Of a DNA stretch of 64,000 nt, positions 2 to 52,011 are shown piece after piece (the first letter of the stretch is position 1; every line of letters begins with the position of its first letter). The stretch is from sequence record PQ330092.1; one strand, 5' to 3'. The position numbers and the translations under genes were made by a program. The notes beneath the pieces were generated by a model, which made no database searches, was not told where the DNA came from, and was given only the letters and a program-made list of their open reading frames with translations.

Positions 2-640
2 GCACAATTTAAGATGATGATAGCTAAAACAGTAGATGGTGTCATAACATCAAATCGTTTTTTATCATCTAGTTACATCCAACTTGGTGCAGCATATCAA
101 CATGGTGTTATTCCTGGTGTTGGTTTTGGATATTACAATTTTCAAGATTCTGACTATCAAACCAAATCTGTATTCAGCGTTTTTGGTACAACATCTGCTG
201 AAATGGATGGTTTAATTAGCGGAAATGGTAGCGTTAAAGAAAAGATTGTGGTAGTATCACAAGACGTTGCACAAGGATTCTCAGTGTACTTTACACGTGA
301 AGTTCCGGTGTTTTTAGGTGGAATTTTCGACAGACTACCTATACAAAGTGTTGATTTAAGTACTGTAAAAAGTAACCCAGCTAATACTACGTTCTATTTG
401 TATATACAAATGAACAGGAATACTAAGAAAGCGTCATATGTTATTAGTACTGAAACAATTGATGAATCTTTAACTAGCACTTACATTGGTAAGATAGTTA
501 CTGGAACTTCAGGAATAACTTCAATTGATACAGAAAAAGTAACTCGTTTTTTGACATATCGTCCAAGTACAACGAAACGTGGTTCAGCGATACCTGCCAG
601 TACTGGTGTACCATCAGGTCCAGGTACACGTTGGAAATAA
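2..640 (+). CDS. C-terminal part of a probable virion structural (baseplate/tail) protein; gene begins upstream of the window
   Basis: Frame is open from base 2 to TAA at 638-640; Thr/Ser/Gly-rich; ends at a terminator. Confidence 0.55.
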   Translation, partial: AQFKMMIAKTVDGVITSNRFLSSSYIQLGAAYQHGVIPGVGFGYYNFQDSDYQTKSVFSVFGTTSAEMDGLISGNGSVKEKIVVVSQDVAQGFSVYFTREVPVFLGGIFDRLPIQSVDLSTVKSNPANTTFYLYIQMNRNTKKASYVISTETIDESLTSTYIGKIVTGTSGITSIDTEKVTRFLTYRPSTTKRGSAIPASTGVPSGPGTRWK

Positions 641-644
641 ATTT

Positions 645-674
645 AAAGCTCGTCTATTGACGGGCTTTTCTTTT
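645..674 (+). terminator. Rho-independent terminator overlapping a sigma70 promoter
   Basis: aaagctcgtc-tatt-gacgggcttt stem followed by tctttt. Confidence 0.85.
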
Positions 675-685
675 ATGTGTATAAT
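657..685 (+). promoter_or_regulatory. sigma70-type early promoter
   Basis: TTGACG-17 nt-TATAAT with TG extension; AGGAGG SD before ATG 708. Confidence 0.85.
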
Positions 686-707
686 TGAATAAAAATAGGA
701 GGAAATT

Positions 708-1274
708 ATGGTCAAAACTTTATTACCACCACCAAAACGTCACAAAATCAAAGAAATGAAAGAACAACGTACATTAAAGATGTACAACAATTTAGTTAAG
801 TTACTGTGTAAAAGTCCATCGCTCAAAGCAGAGTTTAAAACTGATGATGACCGTAAAGCACTAATTGAGATGAAATATATGCTCAGTAAAATGTCCTTTT
901 ACAAATTTGTAAAAGAATACGCATCTGACCCATTTAGTCCTCGTTGGAGAGCCAAACCAAGAGAGTATTTTTACGGTGGTTCATATACAGATCGCATTCA
1001 AGACACAGTGATGGGAGTTGAATTTGAAATCGATTATGAGCCGAATGGTGAGGAAATCTTGCAGATTGAGAAACGTTTACCAAGTGAAGAAGAAATTTAT
1101 GTTTATGCAAGAAAACTTTCAACTTACAGTTCAAGAATTACTCTAGGCAATTTAGATTCATTAATTATTTTCTATACACGTGTTGGTGTAGATAAGATGG
1201 TAACTAAACTCAATGAACTTTCATTACAACAAAAACAGATTAATGCATACAAAGACATTACTGATTTATACTAA
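708..1274 (+). CDS. hypothetical protein, paralogue 1 of a tandem trio
   Basis: Strong SD; shares KS-L-K...D..R+.L++.KY.LSK motif with the next two ORFs. Confidence 0.8.
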   Translation: MVKTLLPPPKRHKIKEMKEQRTLKMYNNLVKLLCKSPSLKAEFKTDDDRKALIEMKYMLSKMSFYKFVKEYASDPFSPRWRAKPREYFYGGSYTDRIQDTVMGVEFEIDYEPNGEEILQIEKRLPSEEEIYVYARKLSTYSSRITLGNLDSLIIFYTRVGVDKMVTKLNELSLQQKQINAYKDITDLY

Positions 1275-1280
1275 TGAGGA

Positions 1281-1802
1281 ATGGATATGTTTTTTGGATC
1301 AGTTGGAAAACAAAACAGTACTTTAATTTGGCATGAAATTATCTTTAAAATTATATCTAAAAGCTACTCACTAAAGGATATTATCACCACAGATAATGAT
1401 AGACGTATCCTGTTAGATGCAAAATATAAATTGAGCAAACACCCTTTACTTTCTTTAATCATTGATTACGTTAATGATTATGAATCTAGTCGTTGGAAGT
1501 GGGAAGACGGCGGTTTATTTCGTGGAAAAACATTCTACGGTGCGGAACGATATGTTTTCAGTGATGCATCAAATGGCGTTAAGTTTGTTATTAGAAACTT
1601 TAACTCCAAAGAAAATGATTATCTTGAAAGTGGAGTGAAAGTATATATCGATAATAATAGCAATGTCCTAACATATGACGAATCACTAATTATGTTACAA
1701 ATAATGCGTGGTGTTGAAGGTGTAAGAAACAACCTTACTAAATTGAAAATCCAGCAAAATGATATACATAATAGACAGAAAATTAAGGGTTTATATAAAT
1801 GA
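1281..1802 (+). CDS. hypothetical protein, paralogue 2 of a tandem trio
   Basis: KSYSLKDIITTDNDRRILLDAKYKLSK motif. Confidence 0.8.
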   Translation: MDMFFGSVGKQNSTLIWHEIIFKIISKSYSLKDIITTDNDRRILLDAKYKLSKHPLLSLIIDYVNDYESSRWKWEDGGLFRGKTFYGAERYVFSDASNGVKFVIRNFNSKENDYLESGVKVYIDNNSNVLTYDESLIMLQIMRGVEGVRNNLTKLKIQQNDIHNRQKIKGLYK

Positions 1803-2308
1803 TTTCATTTTTCAAAAAGAAACAAAAAGTTGATGAAACAGGATTAGAATCGTTTCTATGGACTCTTATCATCAAAAAAAGTCCATTGATAAAAGAATAT
1901 GCTATCAATGATGCTAATAGAAAAACTATTATTGAATACAAATACGAATTATCAAAATGTGATCCAATCGTTTATCACTTTGCGAAGTACTGTTCAAAAA
2001 ATTTATCGGATATCACAATAGACCATGAGTCAGTTCCAATGAGCTTTCCTTATGGTGATTGGGTAGATACTTTTGATATTTTTGATGGGTCCAATGGATT
2101 CAGTTTCTTTTACTCGTCAAATAAAGCAAATGTTCGTATTAAAACAGAGATAGGTTGGGCACAGCATAGCTCAAATAAAGAAGATTATAATTTACTAGCT
2201 GACGTATACCGAAGTGTGAAGAATTCAAAGGATATTGATGAAAGAATTAAAAAGCAAAATCGTATTTCTTTATCACTTGAAACATACAAGTCAAAGTATG
2301 GTGGTTAA
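1799..2308 (+). CDS. hypothetical protein, paralogue 3 of a tandem trio
   Basis: KSPLIKEYAINDANRKTIIEYKYELSK motif; ATGA overlap with previous gene. Confidence 0.8.
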   Translation: MISFFKKKQKVDETGLESFLWTLIIKKSPLIKEYAINDANRKTIIEYKYELSKCDPIVYHFAKYCSKNLSDITIDHESVPMSFPYGDWVDTFDIFDGSNGFSFFYSSNKANVRIKTEIGWAQHSSNKEDYNLLADVYRSVKNSKDIDERIKKQNRISLSLETYKSKYGG

Positions 2309-2310
2309 CG

Positions 2311-2712
2311 ATGACTACAGTTGATGATATCTACAGCACTATACGCAATATGAGTACAGATAGAAAAGTATTTGGTGATAAAGAAAAATCTAAGTGTTAT
2401 GGTATTGATTCTTTTGATATAATTTCTTATGAGTACAACACGAGTGGAAATAGTTCACTGAATATCGTCTGCCCTCGTGACCCAGAAAATAATTTTATGT
2501 ATGTTGAAATTAATAATGATGGAATATTTTTTACAAAAGTTTTTAAAGGTGGAATTAATTACGAACCAATTGAATGTATGAATGAAGAAACTTTCTTTCA
2601 AGAAGATACAATTATCAATTTAGGTTTTAGTTTTGATGATTATAAAACATTAGAACATGACTTTAATCGTTATTATAACGGTTTCTTAAAGGAGTTAACA
2701 ATTTATCTATGA
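2311..2712 (+). CDS. hypothetical protein with EExFFQ-type C-terminal motif
   Basis: ORF track; NEETFFQEDTII motif shared with ORFs at 18.5-19.9 kb. Confidence 0.75.
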   Translation: MTTVDDIYSTIRNMSTDRKVFGDKEKSKCYGIDSFDIISYEYNTSGNSSLNIVCPRDPENNFMYVEINNDGIFFTKVFKGGINYEPIECMNEETFFQEDTIINLGFSFDDYKTLEHDFNRYYNGFLKELTIYL

Positions 2713-3941
2713 ATAACCAATATGTTGAACAAACAATAGTGAAACACTTGGCTGGGTCACAAGCCTACGGAACCAGTACACCTGAAAGTGATACTGATTA
2801 TCGTGGTATTTTTCTTGCTAATAAAGAATTTATTCTTACGCCATTCTATAAGGTCAAAGAAGTAGCTGATAAAAATGAAGAAGATACTAAATTCTATGAG
2901 TTAAATCAGTATTTAAAATTATACACTGAAGCCAACCCTAATATATTGGAATCACTATGGGTCGATCCAGAACACATTGTAGAAAGTACTGAGATTTATG
3001 ACTATCTTCGTTCATTTAACCAAAAACTTCTTAGTTCCAAGATTGCATTTTCATACACTGGATATGCATATAATCAGATTAAGCGTATGACAAATCATCA
3101 CGGTTGGATGGATAAAGAGCGTATTGCTGAAAAACGATTAAATGAGATTTTAGAAGAACACCCTGTCGATGAGGTTCTTGCGTGGATGTATGATTCATTC
3201 CCACAGTATCTTGTTGAACGTTTAGATACATCCAACTTACATCCATTTAATGCTAAAAAGATTGATTTTGAAAAATATATGCGTGATACGTCATTGCAGT
3301 TAGTTTCGAAAAATCCATTAAAGCAATATCATTTTGTAAGATTAGTGCATAACTACACTACTGAAAAAATTCTTGATCGTGATTTCAATTTATTGAATTT
3401 TAATAATGGTTATGAACTAATTCATTACGGAGAAAACATTTTTGCGATTATTAAAAATCCGAATGAAAGCACTATCAACGGTGATGGATCATTGCGTTAT
3501 TTTTCTAAAGAGCGTAGTACTGAAGAGTTGAAAACCAAACCAGAACTAATTGTCAAATTTAACGAAAAAGAATATCAGGAAAATAGTGAGAATAGGAAAA
3601 GTTATCATAAATGGAAAGAAAATCGTAATGCCAAACGTGCTATTTTAGAATCACAACACGGATACGATTGTAAACATGCTATGCACACAATCCGACTTTT
3701 GAATAGTGCAGAAGAAGCATTACAAAGTGGAATTATTCAAGTTAAACGACCAGATGCACAAATGTTGATGGATATTCGTAATGGTAAATGGAAGTATGAA
3801 GAAGTATTAGAATATTTCGATGATAAAGTACAATACATTCGTGATGTTCTATATAAGAAATCAGTACTTCCTAAAAAACCAAACATCAAGTTAGCATCAA
3901 AAATTATCATTGATATTAGAGAAATGCAATGGTATAAGTAA
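2709..3941 (+). CDS. pol-beta superfamily nucleotidyltransferase (RlaP/NrdC.11-like)
   Basis: AGSQAYGTSTPESDTDYRGIF (GS...DxD signature); C-terminal YDCKHAMHTIRLL helix typical of this family. Confidence 0.8.
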   Translation: MNNQYVEQTIVKHLAGSQAYGTSTPESDTDYRGIFLANKEFILTPFYKVKEVADKNEEDTKFYELNQYLKLYTEANPNILESLWVDPEHIVESTEIYDYLRSFNQKLLSSKIAFSYTGYAYNQIKRMTNHHGWMDKERIAEKRLNEILEEHPVDEVLAWMYDSFPQYLVERLDTSNLHPFNAKKIDFEKYMRDTSLQLVSKNPLKQYHFVRLVHNYTTEKILDRDFNLLNFNNGYELIHYGENIFAIIKNPNESTINGDGSLRYFSKERSTEELKTKPELIVKFNEKEYQENSENRKSYHKWKENRNAKRAILESQHGYDCKHAMHTIRLLNSAEEALQSGIIQVKRPDAQMLMDIRNGKWKYEEVLEYFDDKVQYIRDVLYKKSVLPKKPNIKLASKIIIDIREMQWYK

Positions 3942-3983
3942 CATATACAAGTGTAATGGTACTAAAAATGCCATTACACTCAA

Positions 3984-3989
3984 TAAATA
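3984..3989 (+). promoter_or_regulatory. T4-like late promoter core TAAATA (representative; also 7952, 11203, 23940, 25798, 28872, 29653, 32584, 54883; minus strand 44727, 52047, 54847, 60523)
   Basis: Recurs shortly upstream of structural and lysis gene starts; resembles the T4 gp55 TATAAATA -10. Confidence 0.7.
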
Positions 3990-4018
3990 CTCAATATAAA
4001 TTAACACAAGGATTAAGT

Positions 4019-4646
4019 ATGGCACAACAAATTTTCACAGATATCCACACTACCGGAGTTATTAAATTTCAAAATAATTTTTCAGGTGCAACTGGTGTAG
4101 ACATTAAAAATGATGGTTTTAACATTGTCAGTACTCGGATCTATTGATGGTGAAGATAGTTCTCTTAGTGATTCTGTGATTGCATCATTCGGAACTAATA
4201 AAAACAGTTCTTTTATTATATCTGGATGGACTGGAATGACTGATTCTGAAAATAATGTTAAGATAAAAGCTAAAGCTACTAACGAGAATCATGAAACAGA
4301 ATGGGTAACATTATATGATAGTGCAAGTAATAAGTTATATAATGTATTAAGTTCTAATAATATTTTAATTAATCCACTGTCGGGTAATGCTGTTTTTAAT
4401 ATTAATTTATCTGATAGAAATACTACTATTTCGATTGGTGCGGCTCCTACTGAAGTTTATTCAATTACCATCCTATTAACACAACAAACAGGTTCAAACC
4501 TAGTTAATTGGGGTTCTAATGTTAAATGGTCATATAACAGACCAGTTGTTCTTTCTTATGAAATTGGTGAAAAAGATATTATTTCATTAGAAACATATGA
4601 TAAAGGAGTTACATGGTACGGTGCATTAATTAGAGCAGGAGTATGA
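4019..4646 (+). CDS. virion structural protein split by a one-base frameshift near 4117-4120
   Basis: TAAATA at 3984, SD and ATG 4019; removing one T from ggtttta joins MAQQIF...IKNDG to LTLSVLGSIDG...; C-terminus resembles small fibre/baseplate domains. Confidence 0.6.
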
Positions 4647-4647
4647 T

Positions 4648-7437
4648 ATGTTAAACAATAATATTGATAATATTGTACAACTTCTTTATGGGCATCACAA
4701 ATTTATTGAAAGAAATACTGGTGATACAATAGACCCAACAGTACAACATTATGTGGTGAATAATCAGGGTGTTTTGGCGAACAACCGTCATTTTATTAAC
4801 TATTCTGCAATGGAAGGTCAACCAAACGGTGACGGGACAACAGAAGGTCAAAGTCTATTAATTTTAGGATACATTTATGCGTATCTGGCAACAAATGATC
4901 CAATGTTTTTAGATAAAGCCAAATGGTACTGGGATGCATATCATCAGTACTTTTATGCTGGACGTGAATTACCAGATCCACCTACACCACTACAATGTAA
5001 CTGGATAGTTAATGCCAAAGAACCTATATTGGCTAACTGGCCTTTAGCTGATGATGGATGGCCTACACATGGTGGTTTCAAGGGTGTAGAATTTACATTT
5101 ACAAATGGACAATGTAAAATACCACATGGTGCACCTTATTATGGTCAGTTCTTGGATAAAGTAACATTTGCATTCAAAGGTGCTTTAGCATGGAACCAAA
5201 TAAATGCGTCAGTAAAAGCATTATTACCAGATGGTAGTGTTGATTGGGATACACCAGGTGAACAATATGATGTTGACTGGATTATCGATTTCATGGGTAG
5301 AAAAATCGACTGGGATGGTAATATTTTAGCAGAAGGTTTTGACGAATCTGAAAAAGGAACTGTTCAATTAAAGAATACAACAATTAATGGTGTATATAAA
5401 TTAAATTTTGCAAATCGTCAACCAGTAGAATATGGTGGTGTGATAATTCAACGAAATGAAATGCAACACAACCGCCCACTTCATGTTCCAATTGATTTGG
5501 AATTTGCGGATAACGCATCAGATGCAGAATTGTGGTTTAGTGATGCTTCTTATTTGTTATATAAAATAACAAAAGAAAGAAAACATTATTTGGGTTGGAA
5601 ATGTTCACTACTAACGTGTTATGCTTATGGTGATATTGACTCCAGAGATAAATTTTTCAGACAAAGTACAATTGTAACCACACCATTCACTGATGGTATT
5701 TCCTATGAATATTTTTATCCAAGTGATGCTATTGCTAAGTTTGGTAGAAATTCTCTAGGATATATTACTATCAGGCAAGACCAAAGTGCACAAAGTACAA
5801 TGGAACAACAAGCTATTTGGTTCAGGGTCAATGCTGATTCTAAATTACTTGTAGACTATGGTGGTGTATGTGATGATGGTAAGCCGTTATCATTTAAACC
5901 AGTACTGGAATTGTCAAAAACAAAAAATGACCATGATGTTGTTCGTTATCGTTGTGGCTTACCGGAAAGTAAAGACCAAAATATCACACATTCATTAACA
6001 CCTTTAAGTGCATTTGTTAGAGAAAAGAAAGCAGATGGTTCCCCTTATATAATTGCTGATAGTAGAATTGTTGTTCCTTATGGTGCAGCTACGTCCGAAA
6101 TGATATATAGTACTGATATATTAGTTACACGCCGCGATACCATTAATCAGTTAGTTTGTGGTGAAGATGATGGTGCTGTTATTGGATTTTGGCTATTAGC
6201 AACAAATAAGTCTGAAGTTAAATCTTTTACCTATCGTTCATATGAAGATGATTACAATATAAGAATTGTAGATGATAATGGTTGGAGATGGTGGTGGATG
6301 ATTCCTGCAACACACGGGGAATGGACTACAATCACACTAAGTCCCGATACATTACGTTTATCTGGGTATCAGCCAAATCATCCAAGTTCTGACCCAAGAC
6401 CAGATGCACCAGTTTATAGTGAACTAGAAGATATTACTATTTTACCTGATACAACCCCAGTAGATGGTGTTGCTGCAATAATTGATTGGTATTGTATTAA
6501 TGACATTCCAGAATTATACACGGATGCTGACGGTGATGACTATACTATGACATTTTCAATAACAATTGCAGGTGAATCACCATATACTGCACAGTTAGGG
6601 GATTGTGTAATCAAAGATTATTTGTTAAACTCATTGCATTACACACCAGGAACAATACCATTTTCTAACATCACTGACCCGTATGCGAACCAGTATTCAG
6701 GATGGCGTGGTTTACCGTATCCAGGTTATCAATATCCTGTGATATATTGTTTTAAAGACCAGCCAGTAGATAACACACGCTTAGGAAACATGTTAAGCTT
6801 TATGAAAGATTCCCAAACATGGTTTACTCAACAATTCGGTACTGTTGGTCCGTGTGCACAAGCATATGTTTGGAACCGCTGGGATAACTTAAAATATGGT
6901 GAACCAGATACATTTACTATGCTACATTGGGGTGATCAAGCATGGAGTGGGTATGAACCACGTGCGTTCTTTGGGGCTGCCAGAGCATGGCAAGAACTCG
7001 CAGAGAGAGGAATTGAACCACCAGCAGATCTTGTTGAATTTTGTGAGAATTGGATTCACTTTTTAATTCAATTTCAAAAAGATAATGATGGTCGTTCACC
7101 AACAATCTTCAATAAAGATGGCACAGTTGAAGGTCCAGATTGGGACTTTACAGGTCATATGTGTGGGTTGTGGTTAGCTGGGGCTTGTGCTGCTGGATTG
7201 GCTGGATGTAAAATAGAAGGTCTAACAACACTCGCTGATAACTTAGTTCTCGAACTTCAAAAGAATTATGTTATTGTAAATCCAGGTTCACCAATGAATG
7301 GTTCATGGAGTCCAGCAGTTAGAGAAGGTACTGATAATGGTATGTTTTTTGGTTTCTGGGCAGGTGAGATTATGCGTGGATTGGGATTATACTCAATGTA
7401 CCGCTTAAACACACCAAATCGTTTCCGTGATTTATAA
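4648..7437 (+). CDS. large glycoside hydrolase family 8-like (alpha/alpha toroid) protein with inserted beta-rich regions; probably virion-associated
   Basis: TTEGQSL..G..YA.LA.ND and NASDAELW match BcsZ/GH8 motifs TSEGQSY and NSASDGDVW; lies in a late-promoter operon. Confidence 0.6.
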   Translation: MLNNNIDNIVQLLYGHHKFIERNTGDTIDPTVQHYVVNNQGVLANNRHFINYSAMEGQPNGDGTTEGQSLLILGYIYAYLATNDPMFLDKAKWYWDAYHQYFYAGRELPDPPTPLQCNWIVNAKEPILANWPLADDGWPTHGGFKGVEFTFTNGQCKIPHGAPYYGQFLDKVTFAFKGALAWNQINASVKALLPDGSVDWDTPGEQYDVDWIIDFMGRKIDWDGNILAEGFDESEKGTVQLKNTTINGVYKLNFANRQPVEYGGVIIQRNEMQHNRPLHVPIDLEFADNASDAELWFSDASYLLYKITKERKHYLGWKCSLLTCYAYGDIDSRDKFFRQSTIVTTPFTDGISYEYFYPSDAIAKFGRNSLGYITIRQDQSAQSTMEQQAIWFRVNADSKLLVDYGGVCDDGKPLSFKPVLELSKTKNDHDVVRYRCGLPESKDQNITHSLTPLSAFVREKKADGSPYIIADSRIVVPYGAATSEMIYSTDILVTRRDTINQLVCGEDDGAVIGFWLLATNKSEVKSFTYRSYEDDYNIRIVDDNGWRWWWMIPATHGEWTTITLSPDTLRLSGYQPNHPSSDPRPDAPVYSELEDITILPDTTPVDGVAAIIDWYCINDIPELYTDADGDDYTMTFSITIAGESPYTAQLGDCVIKDYLLNSLHYTPGTIPFSNITDPYANQYSGWRGLPYPGYQYPVIYCFKDQPVDNTRLGNMLSFMKDSQTWFTQQFGTVGPCAQAYVWNRWDNLKYGEPDTFTMLHWGDQAWSGYEPRAFFGAARAWQELAERGIEPPADLVEFCENWIHFLIQFQKDNDGRSPTIFNKDGTVEGPDWDFTGHMCGLWLAGACAAGLAGCKIEGLTTLADNLVLELQKNYVIVNPGSPMNGSWSPAVREGTDNGMFFGFWAGEIMRGLGLYSMYRLNTPNRFRDL

Positions 7438-7438
7438 C

Positions 7439-7467
7439 TTGACATAGAAAAAGTAATTATGTATAAT
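7439..7467 (+). promoter_or_regulatory. sigma70-type promoter
   Basis: TTGACA-17 nt-TATAAT with TG extension. Confidence 0.85.
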
Positions 7468-7468
7468 C

Positions 7469-7498
7469 AGAGAACTTCATATGGAGTTCTCTTTTTTT
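7469..7498 (+). terminator. Rho-independent terminator for the upstream late operon
   Basis: agagaacttc-atat-ggagttctct then T6. Confidence 0.8.
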
Positions 7499-7511
7499 AT
7501 AAGGTGATAAA

Positions 7512-7931: not shown

Positions 7932-7984
7932 ACCTATACAATTGTATACTCTAAATAATATCATCAACTATAGGAGATATTATT

Positions 7985-8359: not shown

Positions 8360-8664
8360 AAAAATTATTAGTTCCGTTTATTTCTTTTTTAATTATAAGT
8401 GGATGTGCCGAACAAGTAAAACTACAATCCCCTGCACCAATTAAACAAGAAATTCTGTTAGAAAGATGTGATGATGATACACCTCTACCACAAAAAATTA
8501 TGATTGACAAAAATGGTTTTAAAGGTTATGATGGTGCAGAAATTCTTAAAGTACTTACTCGTTGGGATGCAGTCTACAATGAATGTGCTTTAAAACACGA
8601 CGCATTGATTAAAACTATTCGTGATTTACAAGGTAAAGATATTAAAATCAATATCAAGGAATAA
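8356..8664 (+). CDS. outer-membrane lipoprotein spanin (Rz1-like)
   Basis: Signal peptide with lipobox ISGC; Pro-rich; 4-nt overlap with i-spanin. Confidence 0.75.
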   Translation: MKKLLVPFISFLIISGCAEQVKLQSPAPIKQEILLERCDDDTPLPQKIMIDKNGFKGYDGAEILKVLTRWDAVYNECALKHDALIKTIRDLQGKDIKINIKE

Positions 8665-8665
8665 A

Positions 8666-9277: not shown

Positions 9278-9288
9278 TATGATATTAT

Positions 9289-42727: not shown

Positions 42728-44692
42728 TTATCTAATTGTTACCAATGTTCTTCCGTCGAAACGTACATCAGGTGTTGAAGGTATACTGAACACTACGTTA
42801 GTGCCGTTAAACGTCACGCTATCGACCTCAACACGAGTATAGACACCAGGACTAACCTGTTCCTGTATCTCTGCTGTGACGATGTTTGAGGCTGTTACAG
42901 TAAGGGTGTAGTAGTTACCACTTAAGACCCAAGATGAAATGGTAAAAGCATCGGTTCTCACTGAACCTGAACCAATTGGAACCCATTGACCTTGAACTTT
43001 TTGCATTGAAGTACGCTCGGTATTGGAGTATGCAATCATACCATCAACGCCAACAGAGTTATCAATAGTAGCTAGTACTGGTAATTGAATACCATATCTG
43101 TTGAAACGTGTTCTTATGGTTCCATTATCATAGATACTTACATCAGCATAATTTCCCATTGATAGTTTTAAGTCGGAACTTACTAATTGTATTGTGCTTT
43201 GATTTGTAGTACTTTCTAAAGTAATAATACCATTAGCTAATAAGTTTATATTTTTAAATTTATTACTTGTTCCATTAAAATTTGTGTTTGCTGTAAAAGT
43301 ACTAACACCATTAACTGTAATGGTATCTGATGCAGCATCACCTAATGTGGTATTACCTTGAATGTTCAGATTACCACTAGCAGTTATATTACTAGCTGAT
43401 GTGTCCCCAGTTAATGTACTTGTACCATCAACAACAATATTACCATGAAACGCACTTTCGCCATTTTTAAATTCAACTTGAACTTTATTCATTGAACTAA
43501 ATGAAATAATATTACTACTAGCACTTAATCCTACATTAGTATTAGTTGCATTATCAAATCTGAGTACTGGTGTTGTTGCAGGTGTTGATGTTGATTGATA
43601 TAATGTTAGTGTTGAATTATTAATTCGAACACGTTCTGTACCAGCAGTACTGAACCCAATTGCGTCATCGGCTGGATGAAATATACCAGTATTAGCATCG
43701 GACCACTTCGCTGGGTCATTACCTGGGTTATTCGTTGGGTCAAACGGATTATTATTAAATGTCAATGCTGGTGCTGCTGCACTTCCATACACCACCCCAA
43801 AACGTCCAGAGCCGTCTGTTCCATCATTATACATAGAATCACCAGTTCTACGTAAACACTCAATCACAACGTTATCTATGGATGTTTGAACGGTCCCTGC
43901 GTTTGTCCTAAATTGACGATGATTTGCAATCATTACAGTATTGTCATATAATACTGAAGCAGCGGAAATGCTTGTTCTTGACTGGCGTAGACGTATGTTT
44001 TTATCTTCAGTTATAATAATCCAATCACCATCTGATAGTGCGGTTTGGTTCATTGGAACACCTGAAGCAAATGGTTTGGTTAAGTCAGCATCTGTTGCTA
44101 AATTTTTAAGACCATCATGACCAGTACTCGGAATAGATGCAGGAATAATTCTAGCGAAAGCGTATGTTACTAGTTTAGCACCAGATATATTTGGATTAGA
44201 GTCAACATAATATAAAATTTCAATCCAATTACCTTGTCCAGTTGGATTTGTGGGAGTAAATGTAACAGGACTTGTTTGTGGATTATTTGCTTCATAATGG
44301 GCTTGTGCGGCATCCATAATACCACGAACAACATAATAATCACCATTTAGTGATGCTGCTGGTGCTGGAAGTGGAGTTTGTGCTAAAGGTGGATCAATAT
44401 CATCTGGGATGGGATTATATGTACCAACAAATTGTAAACCACTAGTTACTGAATCTGGTAATTGGGAAGTAAGAAGTTTACCGTTTGCATCTAAGTTTGC
44501 AAAACGTCGATATGCCATAGTACCATCTTCAAAATCCAGAACACCTTCAAATGATTTCCATTCTTTATTGTATCTAATCATCCCTGATCTTATTACATCA
44601 GCGGTTTCTTTTGATGGTGCTTTAGGTAACTCTAAAAAAGATTTACTATCAATAATTACACCACCATCACCTCTAATTCGATTTATACTCAT
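42728..44692 (-). CDS. tail fibre/baseplate-associated structural protein
   Basis: G.IRYN..FEG; SAAAPALTF...TGIFHPADD.IGFST.GTER fibre-type motifs; TAAATA on minus strand at 44727-44732. Confidence 0.7.
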   Translation of the reverse strand: MSINRIRGDGGVIIDSKSFLELPKAPSKETADVIRSGMIRYNKEWKSFEGVLDFEDGTMAYRRFANLDANGKLLTSQLPDSVTSGLQFVGTYNPIPDDIDPPLAQTPLPAPAASLNGDYYVVRGIMDAAQAHYEANNPQTSPVTFTPTNPTGQGNWIEILYYVDSNPNISGAKLVTYAFARIIPASIPSTGHDGLKNLATDADLTKPFASGVPMNQTALSDGDWIIITEDKNIRLRQSRTSISAASVLYDNTVMIANHRQFRTNAGTVQTSIDNVVIECLRRTGDSMYNDGTDGSGRFGVVYGSAAAPALTFNNNPFDPTNNPGNDPAKWSDANTGIFHPADDAIGFSTAGTERVRINNSTLTLYQSTSTPATTPVLRFDNATNTNVGLSASSNIISFSSMNKVQVEFKNGESAFHGNIVVDGTSTLTGDTSASNITASGNLNIQGNTTLGDAASDTITVNGVSTFTANTNFNGTSNKFKNINLLANGIITLESTTNQSTIQLVSSDLKLSMGNYADVSIYDNGTIRTRFNRYGIQLPVLATIDNSVGVDGMIAYSNTERTSMQKVQGQWVPIGSGSVRTDAFTISSWVLSGNYYTLTVTASNIVTAEIQEQVSPGVYTRVEVDSVTFNGTNVVFSIPSTPDVRFDGRTLVTIR

Positions 44693-44777
44693 TTAAATAT
44701 TTCCTCAGAATAGATTATATATGATGTATTTATTTTAGTTAAAAGAAAAGGCCAACCATAGTTGACCTTTGTGTAAA

Positions 44778-45557
44778 TTAACGAATACGTTCAGGAATAT
44801 CAATACCTTCATATACCCAAATTGCAGCTTGTTGTGCTTTATAAATTGCATCAGGATCTAAGTTATCAACCGCATCAATTGCAGAACACTGTTTATCACA
44901 TTCGGTAAACAATTGCTCAATCATTGCAAATGCTTCAGTATATAGTTGAGTCATTTCAGCAGCAGATAATTTTACAATTGCATCATCAAGAAAAATAGAA
45001 ACACTTTCAGAGCCTGAAGTGACTTGTGTATAATAATTAAGAAGCATTTGACGACCAGACATATCAGTACTGTAACGATGACCGTTGAACATATAACCAG
45101 AATTCATACGATTTGTACGTTCTGATATAGTTCTTGCTTTTAAATCAGCCTTAACGTCTGCAATTGGCATATCAATATAATGATATGTTTTGAGAACAGT
45201 TAGTGCTTTATATTCTTCGGTAGCGTCTTCTAAAAATTCAACAATAGGTTGATTTTCATCTTTTAATTTAATAAACTCCAACGGTTGTTCAATAGCATTA
45301 ACATTTCCAACATTTTTATACACTAACCACCAAAAACCTTCTTCTTTTCTAACAGCATCATTAGGTTCTACTGGGGAACCATCTTTACTTGAAATACCAT
45401 AAAGAGTTCTAATATCACTATAAAGATAACGATAGGTTTGTGGATCTTCTGGTGTTGCACCAGGACGTTCTTTAAGTCCTTTTACACCAATTGGATTGGA
45501 AATAATGTTTCCCAATTCATAATTTTCTTTTGAATTTCCTTTCACATATGTGAACAT
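44778..45557 (-). CDS. tail fibre assembly/chaperone-like protein (DUF4376-like C-terminus)
   Basis: ER..R..SG..FNGH.YSTD..R..L motif; directly downstream of the giant fibre gene. Confidence 0.6.
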   Translation of the reverse strand: MFTYVKGNSKENYELGNIISNPIGVKGLKERPGATPEDPQTYRYLYSDIRTLYGISSKDGSPVEPNDAVRKEEGFWWLVYKNVGNVNAIEQPLEFIKLKDENQPIVEFLEDATEEYKALTVLKTYHYIDMPIADVKADLKARTISERTNRMNSGYMFNGHRYSTDMSGRQMLLNYYTQVTSGSESVSIFLDDAIVKLSAAEMTQLYTEAFAMIEQLFTECDKQCSAIDAVDNLDPDAIYKAQQAAIWVYEGIDIPERIR

Positions 45558-45621
45558 ATAACTACCTCACTTGTTATGATGGTGTCACCCAAAATGAGTG
45601 ACACCTTTATTATTATAATTA

Positions 45622-48600
45622 TTAAGCTGTACGTTGTGCAATAAACATATCTGCTACTGGACTCACACCGTCATAAATGACTTGGTAAATGGTCACACTA
45701 CCAGCAGTTTTGTTTAGAGTTCCATCAACAACCGCATAAGTACCGTCAGTAGTAAAGTTTCTATTACCTGTTGTATCTTGTTTCACATAAATGTATACTG
45801 AAGATGCTTTACCACCGCCGATTAGACCAGTGATTGGTGCTAGAGTTGTATCTTGATCTAGAGTGATAAAGTATACGTTGCTAGTACCGTCTGGGGTCCA
45901 AGTACCAGTTGGTGCGATAACAGAAGAAGTTACTTGATTAGGAATAACATCATATTTTTTAGTAGTTACTGTTGTAGTAGTCAAGTCAGCATTAGTAGTT
46001 GTTAATTGACCAGTTACAGTTACATCTTTATCAAATACTGCATTTTCTTTGAAAGAAGATGTTGCATTGACAGTTAATGTATCAGCAGCCGCGTCACCTA
46101 AAACAACACTACCATTTGCAGTCATTAATCCAGTAACAGTTAAAGTACCACCGATTGTTGCTGCTCCAGTAACAGATGCACTAGCAAGTGTTGCTGCACC
46201 AGAAGTAGTAATAGTAGTTACTGAAGTTGCTGCTAGGGTTGCAGTACCTGTTGCAGAAATATCACCACCAACAGTTAGGTTACCAGAAGTAATCCCAACG
46301 GTTCCAGTAATGTTAGCACCACTTGACATTGTTACTGCACCACCAAATGAACCAGTAGTAGTTACTTCAAGGGTGTTCCCTTTTAGCAGACCAGTTGCAG
46401 TAATACTTGTACCTGCGGTAATGCTAGTACCAGCAGCAACACTGTTGGTTGCAGTTAATGATTTAACAGCTACATCAGAGTTTGCTTGGTTTAGTGTTGC
46501 GTTTAGAACACCAGTTACTGTAAAGTTACCGTTGTTAACTACGTTACCATTGATTGTTAAGTTGTTGTTTTGTGAACCAACATCACCAATAGTTGCTGAT
46601 TTAGAAATCAACTCTGCACCAGAAGTAATATTACCCGCTGCACTAATAGTGTCAGCCGCAACAACTGCATAAGGTTCGATTGTTTGACCACTAACATCAA
46701 TATCAGCGTTGATACCACCATCTACACGCAAGGAACCAGCAATGTAAGTGTTAGGGAAAATCTGAACTGTTTCTGGTTGTTCACCGATCTTAGTACCAAT
46801 AATAACATTAGAACCAGTTTTCACTGCACCAGAAGTTGTTAGTGAACCTAAAGTTGCTGCACCAGTTACACCTAGTGTACCACCAATTGTTGCATTGTTA
46901 GTAACTGCTAATGCAGTTCCTTCACCATTAAGAGCGATTGATGGAGCAGTTGCTGCACCAGTTACACCTAGTGTACCACCAATTGTTGCATTACCATCTG
47001 AATGTAGTGTGGTTGCAACAGAAAGACTGTTTGCAACTACATCAGTACTAGCTAAATCCAATGCACCTGGCGTTAATGTACCAGTAATGTTAACATTATT
47101 ACCAAAGGTTGCTGCACCAGTTACATCTATTGTAGTACTAAATGTACCAGAAGTTGCAGATACCGCACCTGAATCTAGTGAACCGACAGTTGCCTTTCCA
47201 GTTACACCTAGTGTACCACCAATTGTTGCATTGTTAGTAACTGCTAATGCAGTTCCTTCACCATTAAGAGCGATTGATGGAGCAGTTGCTGCACCAGTTA
47301 CACCTAGTGTACCACCGATTGTTGCATTGCCGTTTGAATGTAGGGTTGTTGCAACAGAAAGACTGTTAGCATCTACATCAGTACTAGATAAATCCAATGC
47401 ACCTGGGGTTAACGTGCCAGTAATATTAACATTGTTACCAAATGTTGCTGCACCTGTTACACCTAGTGTAGTACTAAATGTACCAGAAGTTGCAGATATT
47501 GCACCTGAATCTAGTGAACCGACTGTTGCCTTTCCAGTTACATCTAAAGTACCACCAACTGTTCCATTTGTGGTTACTGCCAATGTACCAGTACTTAATT
47601 CTTGTGCAGTTACCTTACCGGATGCAGTAACAGTTGAAGTGGAAACACCACCAGTTAGAGTACTTGCACCAGTAACACTTAATGTGGTTGCAGCAGTTAC
47701 GCTATTCACGTTAAGATCAGCACCGGATAGGTCCAAACCACCTTCAGGAATAAATGCACCCTTAACAGTTAGTTTTTGTACAGTACTGTCACCAGTTACA
47801 TCTAGAGTAGATGCTGTAAGGCCACCATTCATACTAGCTGCACCAGTAACACCAAGGGTAGTAGTTACAGTTGCACTATTAAGGGTAGAGTCACCAGAAA
47901 TATTAGCACTTGGTGCGGTAATAGTTCCTGCATCAACTTGAATACCACCATCAACTACTTGAATACCACCAGTATTAACTGTTAGTTTACCACCAGTTGA
48001 CAATGTGTTTGAAACTGTAGTTGCACCAGTTAACGTTGTGGTTCCAGTAACGCCCAAGTTACCAGAAATAGATGGACTACCTGTAATGTTACCTGTAGTT
48101 AGAATCAAATCAGTACCTACAGTGGTAGAGCCAGTACTTTCTAGTGTTACACCGACGATGTTTGCAGAACTTAGGTCAATAGAACCATCAACAGTTAAGT
48201 TACCTTGAACGGTTGCATCACCTAGAGAAGTTAATGTCTTCACAGACACATCAGTTGTGCTAAGATCAATAACACCCGCAGTTAGTGTTCCAGATACTGC
48301 TAAATTACCAGTAATCGCGGTATTTTTAGTAATGGATACATTTTCTGCCGCTGAAGTAATAGAACCAACAGTAAGTACACCACCAACAGTTGCGTTATTA
48401 GTTACATTTAGAGCAGTTCCAACACCAGATAGTGTTGCTGACCCACCAGTAATTGCACCTGAGATTGAAGCTGTTGCTGCTGAAACATCACCAGAAACTA
48501 CTGCATTTGTTGCATTTAGAGCAGACACTGTAACTTCAGTACTTTGAACTTTAGGTAGAACGTTGATACCTTCTGCACTACTAACTGTAATAATACCAGT

Positions 48601-51600
48601 ACTTGTTAGAGATTTAACAGATACATCAGCACCACTTAAATCAACTGTACCAGAAACAACAAGATCTCCACCAATATTTGCTCCAGCGGTAGTAGTAATG
48701 GATTTTGCACTTACATCAGTTGTGCTCAAATCAATTGCACCTGGTGTTACTGTACCAGAAACTGTTAGGTCACCAGTAATAGATGTATTATTGGAAATAG
48801 ATACACCATCAACGTTACTAATTGTTGGGGTTTCTACAGAAACTGCTTTAACTTTACCTGAAGAAGTTACGTCAGCTACGGTAGATGCACCAGTAACATT
48901 CAAATTAGTAATATTTGCAGTTGTTGAACCAAGGGTTGCAATAGTTGCATCAGTACTTTGAAGTTTAGGTAGAACACTACTAATTGTAGATTCATTACTA
49001 ACAATTGCACCAGTACTAGTTAAAGATTTGACAGTAACATCAGCAGTAGTAAGATCTACTGTACCATTAACAGTTAGGTTACCACCAATAGTTGCACCAG
49101 CAGTAGTAGTAATGGATTTAGCATTAACATCAGTTGTTGCTAGATCGATAGAGCCTGGAATAACTGCACCAGTAACGGTTAGGTCACCAGTTACATTTGT
49201 ATTATTGGAAATAGTGACACCACTTGCATTTGAAATGGTTGGGGTAACCAACGATGCAGTTGTAGTTTCACCAGTTACAGTTAAAGTTGACCCAACTAGA
49301 ACAGATGAGCTTGAGTAAATTGTACCCAAATTAGCAGATCCGGTAACAGTTATATCATCAGCATTAACAGTAGTTGCCGTTATGGTAGTACTATTAAGTA
49401 CAGGAAGTACGTTAGCATTAACAAGGTCATTACTTTTAACAATACCAGAAGAAGTTAGTGATTTAACGTTAATGTCTGCTGCTGATAAATCAAAAGAACC
49501 TTGAACCACAAGATCTCCACCAATATTTGCACCAGCGGTAGTAGTGATTGATTTCGCACTAACATCAGTAGTACTCAAATCAATTGTACCTGGGGTTACT
49601 GTACCAGTAACTGTTAGATTTCCAGTAATATCAACATTTTCTGTGAAGTTAGTATTACCACTAATAGTTGGTGCAGTCAGAGTTGTTGCACTAATATTAG
49701 TACCGTTAATTGTTTGTCCACTTACAGTTCCACTCGCAGTGATAGTAGGAGCCGTTACTTCAGTAGATGCACTAATTGTTGGTGCAGATACAGAAGTTGT
49801 ACCAGTAATAGAACCAGAACTTACTGAACCAGCGGATAATGCACCAGAAAGAGTTGCAGTTGTACCAGCAATATCACCAGTAACAGTTAGTTTAGCACCC
49901 ACGGTAGTGTTACCAGTACTTTCAAGGGTTGCACCTTTAATATTTGTCGCAGCAACAACTGAGTTTGGTGTTAGATCCTGACCACTTACATCAACAGTTA
50001 ACCCAGTTACGGTGCCAGTAAAATCGACATCATTAAGAATTGCTTTACCACCAACTTGTAGGAATGGTGTACTAGGGTCTTGTGTTGCGTTACCTGTAAT
50101 GGTTAGGTAATCTAATTTGTTTAGGCCATTACCAGTAATACCATACGTAGAAAGTGCAGCATTACCAAAAGTTGCCGTTTTTAGAACGTTCAGTGTTGAA
50201 GGAGAAACTAATTCTGATTGAACTTCGTTAGGTAAAATCACGGTTGGACGTTGACTTGGTGCAGTATATCCAAATCCAAGTTTTACAGCAGAATCTTGAC
50301 TACTTTGGCCTAAGCTGATAGCTTTAAATGATGCAGTACTGTTATAACCAGTAATATTAGAACCAAGAGTAACACCACCAACTAATGAAGTTGCACCAGT
50401 AACGTTCAAAGATGCTGCATTAATATCGTCTAATTGGAATGTTCCACCAAGAACACCAGAAATATTAATATTATTAAAATTAGCAGTTCCAGTACTTTCA
50501 ATATTTGGTATAGTTGCAGTTCCGGTGACTTCAAAGTCAGCAACTTTGGTTTTTCCTTTTTGAACTTCTAATAGTGGTGTATCTGGAGCTTGTGTTTCGT
50601 TACCAGAAACTGTTAGATAATCTAATTTGTTTAGGCCATTACCAGTAATGCCATAAGACGATAATGACGCATTACCAAAAGTTGCAGTTTTAAGAACGTT
50701 CAATGTAGAAGGAGAAACTACTTCTGATTGAACTTCATTAGGTAGAATAACTGTTGGGCGTTGACCGGGTGCAGTATATCCAAAACCTAGTTTCACTGCT
50801 GCATCTTGACTATTTTGACCTAAGCTAATAGCTTTAAAGGTAGCAGTACTATTATAACCAGTAATATTAGAACCAAGAGTAACACCACCAACTAACGAAG
50901 TGGCCCCAGTAACGTTCAATGTTACTGCATTAATATCATCTAGTTGGAATGTTCCACCAAGAACACCAGAAATATTAATATTATTAAAATTAGCAGTTCC
51001 AGTACTTTCAATATTTGGTATAGTTGCGGTTCCTGTAACTTCAAAATCGGCAACTTTGGTTTTTCCTTTTTGAACTTCTAATAGTGGGGTGTCTGGTGAT
51101 TGTGTATTGTTACCAGAAACTGTTAGATAATCTAATTTGTTTAGACCATTACCAGTAATACCATAAGAAGATAATGACGCATTACCAAAAGAAGCAGATG
51201 TCAAAACTGTTAAGTTTGCAGGTGACATTAACTCGGACTGAATTTCGTTTTGTAGAATTACAGTTGGACGTTTACCTGGAGCAGTGTAAGGGAAGCTTAA
51301 TCTGAAGGTTTGTGATTCAGAGTTAGAACCAATACGAATGTCTTTAAAAGTAGCAGTACTGTTAATACCAGTTACGTTAGCACCGAAAGTTACTGCACCT
51401 TGTTGGTTAGATGCACCAGTAACGTTCAATGTTACTGCATTTAAGTCAGATAGATTAAACTCACCACCAAGTGTACCACTAATTGTCACATCTTTAAATG
51501 TAGCAGTACCAGTACTACTAATATCGGTTGTACTTACATTAGTAATTTCTGCGGTATTAGCAGTAATTTTATCAAATGCAGCAGTAGTACCAACATCAGC

Positions 51601-52011
51601 AGTAATATTACCTTTAAATGCTGTTGTTTCAGCAACTTCTAAGTTTTTAACTTTAGTTGCTTGTAGAGTGGTTGTACCAGCAGTTTGTGTAAAATCAGAA
51701 CCAACTGATACAGTACCGTTAAAGGTAGCGTTTGAATTAATTGTTGCTGTATCAGACCCGACAACTGCACTACCGATTGTAGTATTACCATCAACACCAA
51801 GACCACCAGAAAGTGTTGCTTTGCCACCAACATCTAAAGTAGATGTAATGTTGGCAGTTGATGATTCAATGGCAGTAAAAGTTGCATTTGCAAAAGTTAC
51901 AGTACCATTTACAGTTAGGTTATTATTGAAAACAGCATTTCCTTTGACTAAAAGATCCTTACCAACCGTACCAGCACCAGTAATATCTAAGTCAGTTTTT
52001 ATTGAGTACAT
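45622..52011 (-). CDS. giant (2129 aa) Thr/Gly/Val-rich repetitive fibre protein
   Basis: Short beta-strand repeats (L.V.G, ..GG.L.V.G); almost no Trp or Cys; TAAATA on minus strand at 52047-52052. Confidence 0.85.
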   Translation of the reverse strand: MYSIKTDLDITGAGTVGKDLLVKGNAVFNNNLTVNGTVTFANATFTAIESSTANITSTLDVGGKATLSGGLGVDGNTTIGSAVVGSDTATINSNATFNGTVSVGSDFTQTAGTTTLQATKVKNLEVAETTAFKGNITADVGTTAAFDKITANTAEITNVSTTDISSTGTATFKDVTISGTLGGEFNLSDLNAVTLNVTGASNQQGAVTFGANVTGINSTATFKDIRIGSNSESQTFRLSFPYTAPGKRPTVILQNEIQSELMSPANLTVLTSASFGNASLSSYGITGNGLNKLDYLTVSGNNTQSPDTPLLEVQKGKTKVADFEVTGTATIPNIESTGTANFNNINISGVLGGTFQLDDINAVTLNVTGATSLVGGVTLGSNITGYNSTATFKAISLGQNSQDAAVKLGFGYTAPGQRPTVILPNEVQSEVVSPSTLNVLKTATFGNASLSSYGITGNGLNKLDYLTVSGNETQAPDTPLLEVQKGKTKVADFEVTGTATIPNIESTGTANFNNINISGVLGGTFQLDDINAASLNVTGATSLVGGVTLGSNITGYNSTASFKAISLGQSSQDSAVKLGFGYTAPSQRPTVILPNEVQSELVSPSTLNVLKTATFGNAALSTYGITGNGLNKLDYLTITGNATQDPSTPFLQVGGKAILNDVDFTGTVTGLTVDVSGQDLTPNSVVAATNIKGATLESTGNTTVGAKLTVTGDIAGTTATLSGALSAGSVSSGSITGTTSVSAPTISASTEVTAPTITASGTVSGQTINGTNISATTLTAPTISGNTNFTENVDITGNLTVTGTVTPGTIDLSTTDVSAKSITTTAGANIGGDLVVQGSFDLSAADINVKSLTSSGIVKSNDLVNANVLPVLNSTTITATTVNADDITVTGSANLGTIYSSSSVLVGSTLTVTGETTTASLVTPTISNASGVTISNNTNVTGDLTVTGAVIPGSIDLATTDVNAKSITTTAGATIGGNLTVNGTVDLTTADVTVKSLTSTGAIVSNESTISSVLPKLQSTDATIATLGSTTANITNLNVTGASTVADVTSSGKVKAVSVETPTISNVDGVSISNNTSITGDLTVSGTVTPGAIDLSTTDVSAKSITTTAGANIGGDLVVSGTVDLSGADVSVKSLTSTGIITVSSAEGINVLPKVQSTEVTVSALNATNAVVSGDVSAATASISGAITGGSATLSGVGTALNVTNNATVGGVLTVGSITSAAENVSITKNTAITGNLAVSGTLTAGVIDLSTTDVSVKTLTSLGDATVQGNLTVDGSIDLSSANIVGVTLESTGSTTVGTDLILTTGNITGSPSISGNLGVTGTTTLTGATTVSNTLSTGGKLTVNTGGIQVVDGGIQVDAGTITAPSANISGDSTLNSATVTTTLGVTGAASMNGGLTASTLDVTGDSTVQKLTVKGAFIPEGGLDLSGADLNVNSVTAATTLSVTGASTLTGGVSTSTVTASGKVTAQELSTGTLAVTTNGTVGGTLDVTGKATVGSLDSGAISATSGTFSTTLGVTGAATFGNNVNITGTLTPGALDLSSTDVDANSLSVATTLHSNGNATIGGTLGVTGAATAPSIALNGEGTALAVTNNATIGGTLGVTGKATVGSLDSGAVSATSGTFSTTIDVTGAATFGNNVNITGTLTPGALDLASTDVVANSLSVATTLHSDGNATIGGTLGVTGAATAPSIALNGEGTALAVTNNATIGGTLGVTGAATLGSLTTSGAVKTGSNVIIGTKIGEQPETVQIFPNTYIAGSLRVDGGINADIDVSGQTIEPYAVVAADTISAAGNITSGAELISKSATIGDVGSQNNNLTINGNVVNNGNFTVTGVLNATLNQANSDVAVKSLTATNSVAAGTSITAGTSITATGLLKGNTLEVTTTGSFGGAVTMSSGANITGTVGITSGNLTVGGDISATGTATLAATSVTTITTSGAATLASASVTGAATIGGTLTVTGLMTANGSVVLGDAAADTLTVNATSSFKENAVFDKDVTVTGQLTTTNADLTTTTVTTKKYDVIPNQVTSSVIAPTGTWTPDGTSNVYFITLDQDTTLAPITGLIGGGKASSVYIYVKQDTTGNRNFTTDGTYAVVDGTLNKTAGSVTIYQVIYDGVSPVADMFIAQRTA
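46862..47545. repeat. two near-identical tandem 336-nt (112-codon) repeats inside the fibre gene
   Basis: ccagttacacc anchors at 46862 and 47198, ccagttacat at 47534; long runs of identity. Confidence 0.9.
50030..51510. repeat. three tandem 510-nt (170-codon) repeats inside the fibre gene
   Basis: gttag(a/g)taatctaatttgtttag blocks start at 50101, 50611, 51121. Confidence 0.9.

Follow-up and report, generated by a model that had tools for sequence, protein, structure and literature searches.

The palindrome AGTACT is strongly over-represented and conserved in the genomes of enterobacterial Rak2-like jumbo phages

The palindromic hexamer AGTACT was found in large excess throughout the genome of Escherichia phage JP4 (PQ330092.1), a jumbo myovirus of 370,741 bp from the 121Q/PBECO4 group (Asteriusvirus, ‘Rak2-like’), and in the genomes of its enterobacterial relatives, where it is most likely a genome-wide mark read by some factor. 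The stretch of DNA under study, hereafter the window, comprises 64,000 bases that are 100% identical to bases 245,611-309,610 of JP4 and contain no N; the 91 annotated coding sequences (CDS) within it were taken from the JP4 record. An earlier note on this DNA had claimed an over-representation of AGTACT between positions 359 and 52,000, and had read it either as a selected genome-wide mark, laid down largely via codon choice, or as the outcome of a directional mutational bias. The over-representation is confirmed, and the former reading is supported by the persistence of the excess under the codon controls, by the conservation at silent sites and by the occurrence of the trait in four genera, all described below. 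No description of AGTACT enrichment was found in the literature on these phages.

Results

AGTACT in the window and in the JP4 genome

The window contains 125 copies of AGTACT, about one per 512 bp. Base composition (Markov order 0) predicts 21.7, or 3.4 per 10 kb, in line with the 3-4 per 10 kb estimated beforehand, and higher orders predict 18.9 (order 1), 30 (order 2), 49 (order 3) and 98 (order 4); for orders 0-2 AGTACT is the top over-represented hexamer. Sites had already been seen by eye in several frames, and all three are indeed both occupied and enriched: 73 copies read AGT-ACT, 32 read xxA-GTA-CTx, 16 read xAG-TAC-Txx and 4 are non-coding. A synonymous shuffle, in which codons are permuted inside each gene so that protein sequences and per-gene codon usage are unchanged, gave 36.1±5.1 coding copies against 122 observed (z = 16.7), the three frames being raised 3.1-, 4.4- and 3.6-fold. 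As 124 of the 125 sites lie in distinct 18-mer contexts, exact repeats are not the cause of the excess, and with one copy of the terminal repeat removed from the genome-wide tests, exact repeats and duplicated domains were rejected as its source.

The JP4 record carries a direct terminal repeat of ~20.1 kb twice in tandem (122,777-142,919 and about 142,891-163,033, an offset of 20,114). Raw genome-wide counts therefore double-count this AGTACT-dense region, and the second copy was taken out for the whole-genome tests, which covered 626 open reading frames (ORFs). The JP4 genome has 1,048 copies of AGTACT, compared with expectations of 125 (order 0), 201 (order 2), 392 (order 3) and 844 (order 4), and among the 16 words of the form NGTACN it is the only one enriched. 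By synonymous shuffle, 801 coding copies were observed against 230±13, which places AGTACT first of all 4,096 hexamers, followed by its own overlaps GTACTG and CAGTAC. Every frame is enriched, with counts of 398/161/242 against 125/40/65. The genome-wide Markov and amino-acid-preserving k-mer tests that had been suggested thus both put the word far above expectation.

According to the earlier note, its claim would be refuted if the excess disappeared once amino-acid and dicodon usage were controlled for, and this did not happen. A dicodon-chain control is very conservative because dicodons hold five-sixths of AGTACT already, and it still left a 1.9-fold excess (242 vs 129 and 161 vs 83.5). Among 1,838 codon pairs, the five with the strongest bias were GTA-CTG, CAG-TAC, AGT-ACT, AAG-TAC and GAG-TAC, all of them sub-words of CAGTACTG. 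Density is higher in non-coding DNA (4.9 sites per kb) than in coding DNA (2.4 per kb) and reaches 6.5 per kb in the 20-kb terminal repeat with its many small early genes. The ratio of observed to shuffled counts is 2.65-4.3 across every 20-kb bin, whatever the gene class, and the spacing of sites is near-Poisson, with a coefficient of variation of 1.1 and a mean of 437 bp outside the early region.

A scan of IMG/VR provided a positive control for the shuffle test: among the contigs listed, the densest unrelated AGTACT loci encode Ser-Thr repeat proteins and fail the test, and only a Rak2-like fragment passes it. A reading of AGTACT as a primase site was set aside, since GTACT taken as a single-strand word lacking the initial A shows no enrichment.

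Avoidance of other palindromes

Phages are textbook palindrome avoiders, and JP4 shows restriction-site avoidance in an extreme form. GCGC has 0 copies in all five Rak2-like genomes, with about 200-320 expected in JP4 and 25-58 in the window, and at least 16 6-bp palindromes stand at zero in JP4, including CCATGG (69 expected), CTGCAG (64), GCATGC (49), GGATCC (38) and GGTACC (72). AGTACT runs the opposite way, at 5.2 times its order-2 expectation, the next most enriched palindrome reaching 1.5 times. The missing palindromes reflect either very strong restriction-site avoidance or a use of those words to target host DNA. GATC is also under-represented in JP4 (693 vs about 1,070-1,280), and the host Chi sequence is unremarkable (23 + 11 copies).

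Further words are purged from JP4 genes. CAGCTG (1 vs 61) and ACCGGT (2 vs 37) are nearly absent, and the most avoided hexamers after the shuffle are TATTTA (62 vs 261) and TAAATA (95 vs 263). Avoidance of the last two fits with avoidance of stray T4-type late promoters (ATAAATA); an ATAAATA late promoter has reportedly been proposed for CBB and GAP32.

Distribution across phages and in the host

AGTACT is abundant in RaK2 (937 copies), GAP32 (1,011), CBB (1,235), pEa_SNUABM_50 (1,078) and vB_Ec-M-J (1,125), and the reversed word occurs 142-187 times in the same five relatives. In CBB the word was counted only; the other four were fetched in full and shuffled, and all four pass the test, with 820-986 coding sites against 229-266 expected. 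The excess is shared by five genomes from four genera. Counts in the outgroups T4 (29), PA5oct (15), XacN1 (0), Atu_ph07 (25) and CM1 (36) are all under the control word. A comparison with relatives, as the earlier note had recommended, thus finds the excess in the other enterobacterial Rak2-like genomes and not in the five outgroups. E. coli K-12 has 400 copies in 4.64 Mb, that is 0.086 per kb; the phage, with 2.83 per kb, is 33 times as dense.

Conservation of sites

Codon alignments of JP4 genes were made with vB_Ec-M-J (same genus, about 85% nucleotide identity) and with RaK2 (another genus, 57% median amino-acid identity). Of 109 codon pairs, AGT-ACT shows the highest conservation between JP4 and vB_Ec-M-J (87%, the median being 50%) and again ranks first between JP4 and RaK2 (71%). 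Where the amino acids are unchanged, a site in JP4 is also a site in vB_Ec-M-J in a fraction of 0.86 and in RaK2 in 0.63; in compatible contexts where JP4 has no site, the relative has one in 0.19 (vB_Ec-M-J) and 0.26 (RaK2). Overall, AGTACT sites disappear at a rate 3-5 times lower than that of other codon pairs. The proteome of JP4 leans the same way: Ser-Thr is its most over-represented dipeptide (1.48; Thr-Ser 0.98), Gln-Tyr stands at 1.44 and Val-Leu at 1.37 (Leu-Val 0.96), and 53% of Ser-Thr pairs are spelled AGTACT.

The nine classes of one-off variant of AGTACT occur at 0.73-1.39 of expectation, none being strongly depleted. The only variants enriched genome-wide are AGTACA/TGTACT and AGCACT, and the C-to-T variant AATACT/AGTATT is mildly depleted (0.82, z = -4.9).

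Site anatomy and early promoters

In JP4 the signal in the flanks of AGTACT is limited to positions -1 (C in 44%) and +1 (G in 45%). These preferences mirror each other, and neither half of the site varies with the other, which is the pattern that a symmetric dimer reading duplex DNA should leave. In all five genomes the flanks used least are G at -1 and C at +1. The favoured flanks vary with genus: C/G are preferred in three genomes, and in two A/T are used as much as C/G.

A minority of sites keep a set distance from the -35 and -10 hexamers of sigma70-type promoters. Genome-wide, AGTACT starts 27 nt upstream of TATAAT in 21 cases and 7 nt upstream in 18, with a background of 2.4 per offset. 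Typical forms, AAAGTACTTGCA-N16-TATAAT and AGTACTGTATAAT, belong to sigma70-type promoters in the terminal repeat, where AGTACT either shares bases with the -35 element of early promoters or lies directly next to their -10 element. Such promoter-tied sites make up about 4% of all AGTACT and lie mostly in the terminal repeat. The 12-bp palindrome TTCAGTACTGAA is found mostly in non-coding DNA.

A block without ACT carries a substitute word

Two blocks of JP4 that lie outside the window, shortly past the terminal repeat, lack AGTACT (163,034-168,040 and 170,702-178,960). The second, with about 20 small genes (170,705-178,890), has 0 copies of ACT on its coding strand over 8,187 bp, where 166 are expected; AGT is normal there and words containing CT are 2-3 fold low. 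Its counterpart in vB_Ec-M-J is ACT-free over 8,458 bp (28,769-37,225), and the two blocks differ at 1,237 positions, a number of changes that would make about 50 ACT if they were random. RaK2, GAP32 and pEa_SNUABM_50 have no ACT-free block. Within the block AGTACA replaces AGTACT at equal density. There are 44 copies where the genome rate would give 5.3, and by shuffle 42 copies compare with 13.2±2.7; the word lies in all three frames with the same C(-1)/G(+1) flanks as AGTACT, and likewise in vB_Ec-M-J. No other single argument speaks as strongly as this surrogate for a need for the sites, as opposed to mere tolerance of them.

The block looks like evasion of an agent that is specific for three nucleotides and acts on RNA or on one DNA strand. 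We read in it two separate pressures: ACT is banned in a strand-specific way (as ACU in mRNA or as ACT in one DNA strand), and the duplex site is demanded genome-wide, a demand that the block satisfies with the best near-cognate open to it. Searches of Pfam and PHROGs assigned no function to the block's proteins. A phage toxin of the MazF/PemK type was rejected as its cause, that family not being encoded by the phage.

The other gap, JP4 163,034-168,040, holds 21 tiny tandem genes (about 70 aa each) in 5 kb, with 0 AGTACT, scarce GTAC and normal ACT. These genes share words such as AAACTATCAGG and look like a paralogous family, and the same AGTACT gap is found at 21,389-26,696 of vB_Ec-M-J. 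RaK2 (NC_019526.1) has a 3.4-kb stretch without GTC at 258,424-261,843 (16.5 times the mean spacing) within 5.7 kb without CGC, which may be a less pronounced counterpart of the ACT-free block or a plain low-G+C insert.

Sites and genes of the window

The sites of the window begin at the positions listed below, and 17 of them fall in 52,001-64,000, beyond the range first claimed. The local counts made by eye agree well with those obtained here: 18 in 1-10,000 (at least 17 claimed), 22 in 11,000-20,000 (at least 18), with 21 for the fibre gene (about 20). The three copies that had been placed in a non-coding unit are the trio in the poorly coding stretch at 10.1-10.5 kb.

AGTACT starts from 359 to 15,944: 359, 446, 599, 1317, 1986, 2985, 3516, 3863, 4130, 4946, 5901, 6109, 7578, 8305, 8550, 8729, 9423, 9597, 10233, 10425, 10450, 11068, 11283, 11312, 12498, 12855, 12875, 13230, 13562, 14870, 14888, 15421, 15818, 15944
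AGTACT starts from 16,687 to 31,867: 16687, 16725, 16821, 16977, 17251, 18236, 19018, 19573, 19614, 20171, 20376, 20814, 21480, 21538, 22560, 23061, 23382, 23769, 24495, 25335, 25703, 26879, 27390, 27909, 27948, 28047, 28305, 29348, 29561, 29878, 30510, 31063, 31809, 31867
AGTACT starts from 33,729 to 49,915: 33729, 35120, 35854, 36476, 36659, 38107, 38531, 38614, 40153, 41333, 41638, 42136, 43074, 43208, 43298, 43563, 43646, 44123, 45066, 47044, 47134, 47380, 47470, 47590, 47659, 47782, 48133, 48538, 48598, 48952, 49012, 49387, 49570, 49915
AGTACT starts from 50,335 to 63,780: 50335, 50491, 50845, 51001, 51355, 51511, 52213, 52759, 54547, 55554, 55593, 55659, 56292, 56592, 57603, 57920, 58958, 59632, 59927, 60691, 62305, 62344, 63780
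10,233-10,455, no strand: trio of AGTACT sites (10,233, 10,425, 10,450) in the poorly coding stretch, where the record annotates only ORFs of 29-38 aa
23,769-23,774, no strand: intergenic AGTACT between CDS 23,338-23,715 and CDS 23,807-23,926
40,153-40,158, no strand: AGTACT over the stop codon of CDS 38,729-40,153 and the adjoining intergenic DNA
45,622-52,011, minus strand: tail-fibre gene (2,129 aa) with 21 AGTACT against 7.0 by shuffle, 20 of the 21 in distinct 30-mer contexts

Within the fibre gene (minus strand), between 50,335 and 51,516, sites recur with an exact period of 510 bp (50,335/50,845/51,355 and 50,491/51,001/51,511), which shows three diverged internal repeats of 170 aa in which the sites were retained. 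Two labels in the record look wrong: the ‘HNH endonuclease’ at 38,729-40,153 (plus strand) matches a DUF2201 metallopeptidase and a VWA-like domain, and the ‘starvation-inducible transcriptional regulator’ at 11,238-11,678 (plus strand) matches DUF5856 alone. A search of the 64-kb window with Rfam gave no match.

Discussion

A proposed duplex site for a symmetric protein

The explanation that we tentatively prefer is that AGTACT is a duplex site for a putative symmetric, clade-specific DNA-binding protein, which would mark or organise the phage DNA and would double as a ligand of operators at early promoters. AGTACT, often as (C)AGTACT(G), is most likely a cis-acting site on duplex DNA, kept by selection at about 2.5-3 per kb genome-wide in the enterobacterial Rak2-like jumbo phages. 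Its reader would be a twofold-symmetric, clade-specific and probably phage-encoded protein that recognises DNA, and the form we favour is an abundant dimeric protein that would coat or organise the phage DNA. Such a coat would tell phage DNA from host DNA, with its 33-fold fewer sites per kb, and the same protein would regulate the immediate-early sigma70-type promoters by binding to their operators. AGTACA/TGTACT may be a weaker near-cognate, used where ACT is forbidden on one strand.

Several points weigh against this proposal. The TetR-type helix-turn-helix (HTH) domain TetR_N, MutH and MutS were not found in the phages, most of whose roughly 700 genes are hypothetical, and our literature search yielded no experimental data on AGTACT sites. 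Since the flanks differ between genera, the reader must have drifted, or else the hexamer alone matters; and with only about 4% of sites tied to promoters, an operator role cannot account for the bulk of them. The reader could also be a methyltransferase and not a binding protein. Methyl-directed mismatch repair by the phage itself was discarded as an explanation, there being neither MutH nor MutS.

Methylation as a possible self-mark

The main rival, possible though we think it doubtful, is that AGTACT is instead the target of a phage methyltransferase, the best candidate being a small NPPY enzyme of family PF05869 (JP4 202,592-203,113), and that it serves as an epigenetic self-mark which protects the sites or is read by another factor. 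The enzyme is present in 5/5 AGTACT-rich genomes and 0/5 AGTACT-poor outgroups, with its NPPY motif intact at 42-88% identity, but this pattern sets one clade against outgroups and therefore amounts to one evolutionary event only. Type II methylases typically have targets of this kind, palindromes of 6 bp, and the retention of 1,000 ScaI-type sites in a genome that has removed at least 16 other 6-bp palindromes would be easier to understand if those sites were protected. Characterised PF05869 enzymes are GATC-specific or non-specific, which argues against such a role; the low count of GATC in JP4 is a hint that this one may be no plain Dam. Moreover, methylation by itself gives no reason why more sites should be better.

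The search for a methyltransferase that the earlier note had urged gave the PF05869 enzyme as the best candidate, and the other candidate writers fared worse. The C5 methylase (JP4 48,238-49,098) is missing from pEa_SNUABM_50, which nevertheless has 1,078 sites, and for the RaK2 enzyme bisulfite data indicate CpG methylation (PMC3622015). A D12-class Dam (PF02086) is absent, and PF01555, present in only three genomes, is lacking in JP4 and RaK2.

A possible strand-specific code

A more speculative and rather improbable proposal is a strand-specific ‘self code’ based on ACT, of which AGTACT would be the form that serves both strands. Half-sites containing ACT would be acted on by an enzyme or reader peculiar to the clade, perhaps the NPPY methyltransferase, and a dense symmetric mark would take the place of base hypermodification in setting phage DNA apart from host DNA. 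The 8.2-kb early block of Asteriusvirus, ACT-free on the coding strand and provided with AGTACA/TGTACT hemi-sites, would then be marked, cut or bound on one strand only.

Less likely explanations: cleavage, host proteins and neutral processes

We consider it improbable that AGTACT is a cleavage or nicking site of a putative phage endonuclease, making breaks for recombination-dependent replication or nicks for clamp loading in T4-type late transcription. Many HNH and other endonucleases are encoded, the uniform, Poisson-like spread over gene classes would suit a replication- or transcription-wide need, a palindrome works for both strands, and a hemi-site AGTACA/TGTACT in the ACT-free block would confine the event to one strand. 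Against this, the virion DNA of fEgEco12 gives the restriction patterns predicted for intact DNA (PMC13070987).

That a protein of the Enterobacterales, such as the nucleoid-occlusion factor SlmA, reads the sites and is exploited by the phage seems very unlikely to us. The AGTACT-rich phages all infect Enterobacterales, and relatives infecting Pseudomonas, Xanthomonas, Stenotrophomonas and Agrobacterium have no excess. The 12-bp SlmA-binding sequence of E. coli, GTGAGTACTCAC, is a palindrome read by a dimer and centred on AGTACT (Tonthat et al. 2011, PMC3020112), but SlmA requires G and T at positions 1 and 2 (PMC3020112), and these flanks are absent, or even depleted, around the phage sites: GTRAGYRCTYAC occurs 0 times in JP4, vB_Ec-M-J, GAP32 and pEa_SNUABM_50 and once in RaK2, one GTR flank is present at only 0.7-2.5% of sites against about 3% by base composition, and the rarity of G at -1 and C at +1 in all five genomes runs counter to it as well. 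T4, which shares the host, has only its 29 sites. With the flanks wrong and no TetR_N match, hence no TetR-family gene, in the phages, a phage TetR-like reader was also rejected, and SlmA itself is close to refuted.

We give very little credence to a neutral origin, in which AGTACT is made again and again through a bias in mutation or repair (very-short-patch repair or biased gene conversion, for example); this is the directional mutational bias of the earlier note, which is disfavoured by the slow loss of sites, the lack of a clearly depleted one-off variant and the absence of Vsr. New sites do arise, the relative having AGTACT in 19-26% of the compatible contexts where JP4 lacks it, and AATACT/AGTATT shows its mild depletion. 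Existing sites, however, are kept at well above the codon-pair median, the proteome is bent toward Ser-Thr, Gln-Tyr and Val-Leu, the surrogate AGTACA is enriched precisely where AGTACT cannot occur, and two adjacent blocks escape the excess despite having the same replication machinery. No donor word is drained, contrary to what a Vsr-like process would do, and Vsr (PF03852) has no match in the five genomes, so that Vsr-like repair was rejected as the cause.

Hardly tenable at all is the view that the excess is a by-product of protein composition and of codon or codon-pair usage, for example in Ser/Thr-rich structural proteins: AGT, ACT, GTA and TAC are common codons in JP4, and the unrelated AGTACT-dense IMG/VR contigs are wholly explained in this way, with counts that match the shuffle and essentially one frame, but in JP4 the shuffle falls far short of the observed count, three frames and non-coding DNA are all enriched and an excess survives the dicodon chain, so that a codon, dipeptide or dicodon artefact is refuted for both window and genome.

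Comparison with known systems

The closest known case to AGTACT is HIP1 (GCGATCGC), the highly iterated palindrome of cyanobacteria (Xu, Lawrence and Durand 2018, PMC5861425). HIP1 is in 15-300 fold excess with a periodicity of 10-90 kb, and the conservation of its sites between genomes has been taken as a sign of selection over replenishment by biased repair (PMC5861425). Both are short palindromes far above codon-aware expectation, inside and between genes, and both are conserved between genomes; for HIP1 a link to methylation is suspected. They differ in that HIP1 belongs to cellular genomes and AGTACT to a clade of lytic jumbo phages, and in that AGTACT, which is 6 bp long and A+T-rich, is in 5-8 fold excess. 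Unlike HIP1, the sites of JP4 are spaced in near-Poisson fashion at short range and lie in a genome that fully removes most other palindromes, some AGTACT are built into early promoters, and a one-strand surrogate, AGTACA, exists.

In E. coli, Vsr drives the over-representation of Dcm sites (CCWGG), again a palindrome in excess and in that case a methylase target; the phages differ in having no Vsr, a donor word that is only weakly depleted and a conservation of sites that points to selection. Chi, KOPS and DNA uptake sequences are likewise abundant short words selected in coding DNA via codon choice, but those words lack symmetry and have a direction. A palindrome whose flanks mirror each other, as AGTACT is, can have no orientation and is therefore a poor fit for a Chi-like signal, one of the options raised in the earlier note.

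Conclusions

It is informative that genomes which avoid palindromes to an extreme have come under pressure to hold about 1,000 copies of a single one, and this pressure for AGTACT suffices to fix silent positions and to bend the composition of the proteome. It points to a system that reads sequence along the whole 350-kb genome and that could recognise, organise, regulate or protect phage DNA without recourse to modified bases. These phages offer a counterpart to the HIP1 problem that is easier to test, being lytic coliphages with one motif and with ScaI at hand, and the ACT-free block with its AGTACA surrogate provides a natural genetic contrast that separates a duplex signal from a strand-specific constraint. 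In practical terms, the AGTACT density, higher than in the host by a factor of about 33, gives a simple signature for spotting such phages, and foreign inserts in them.

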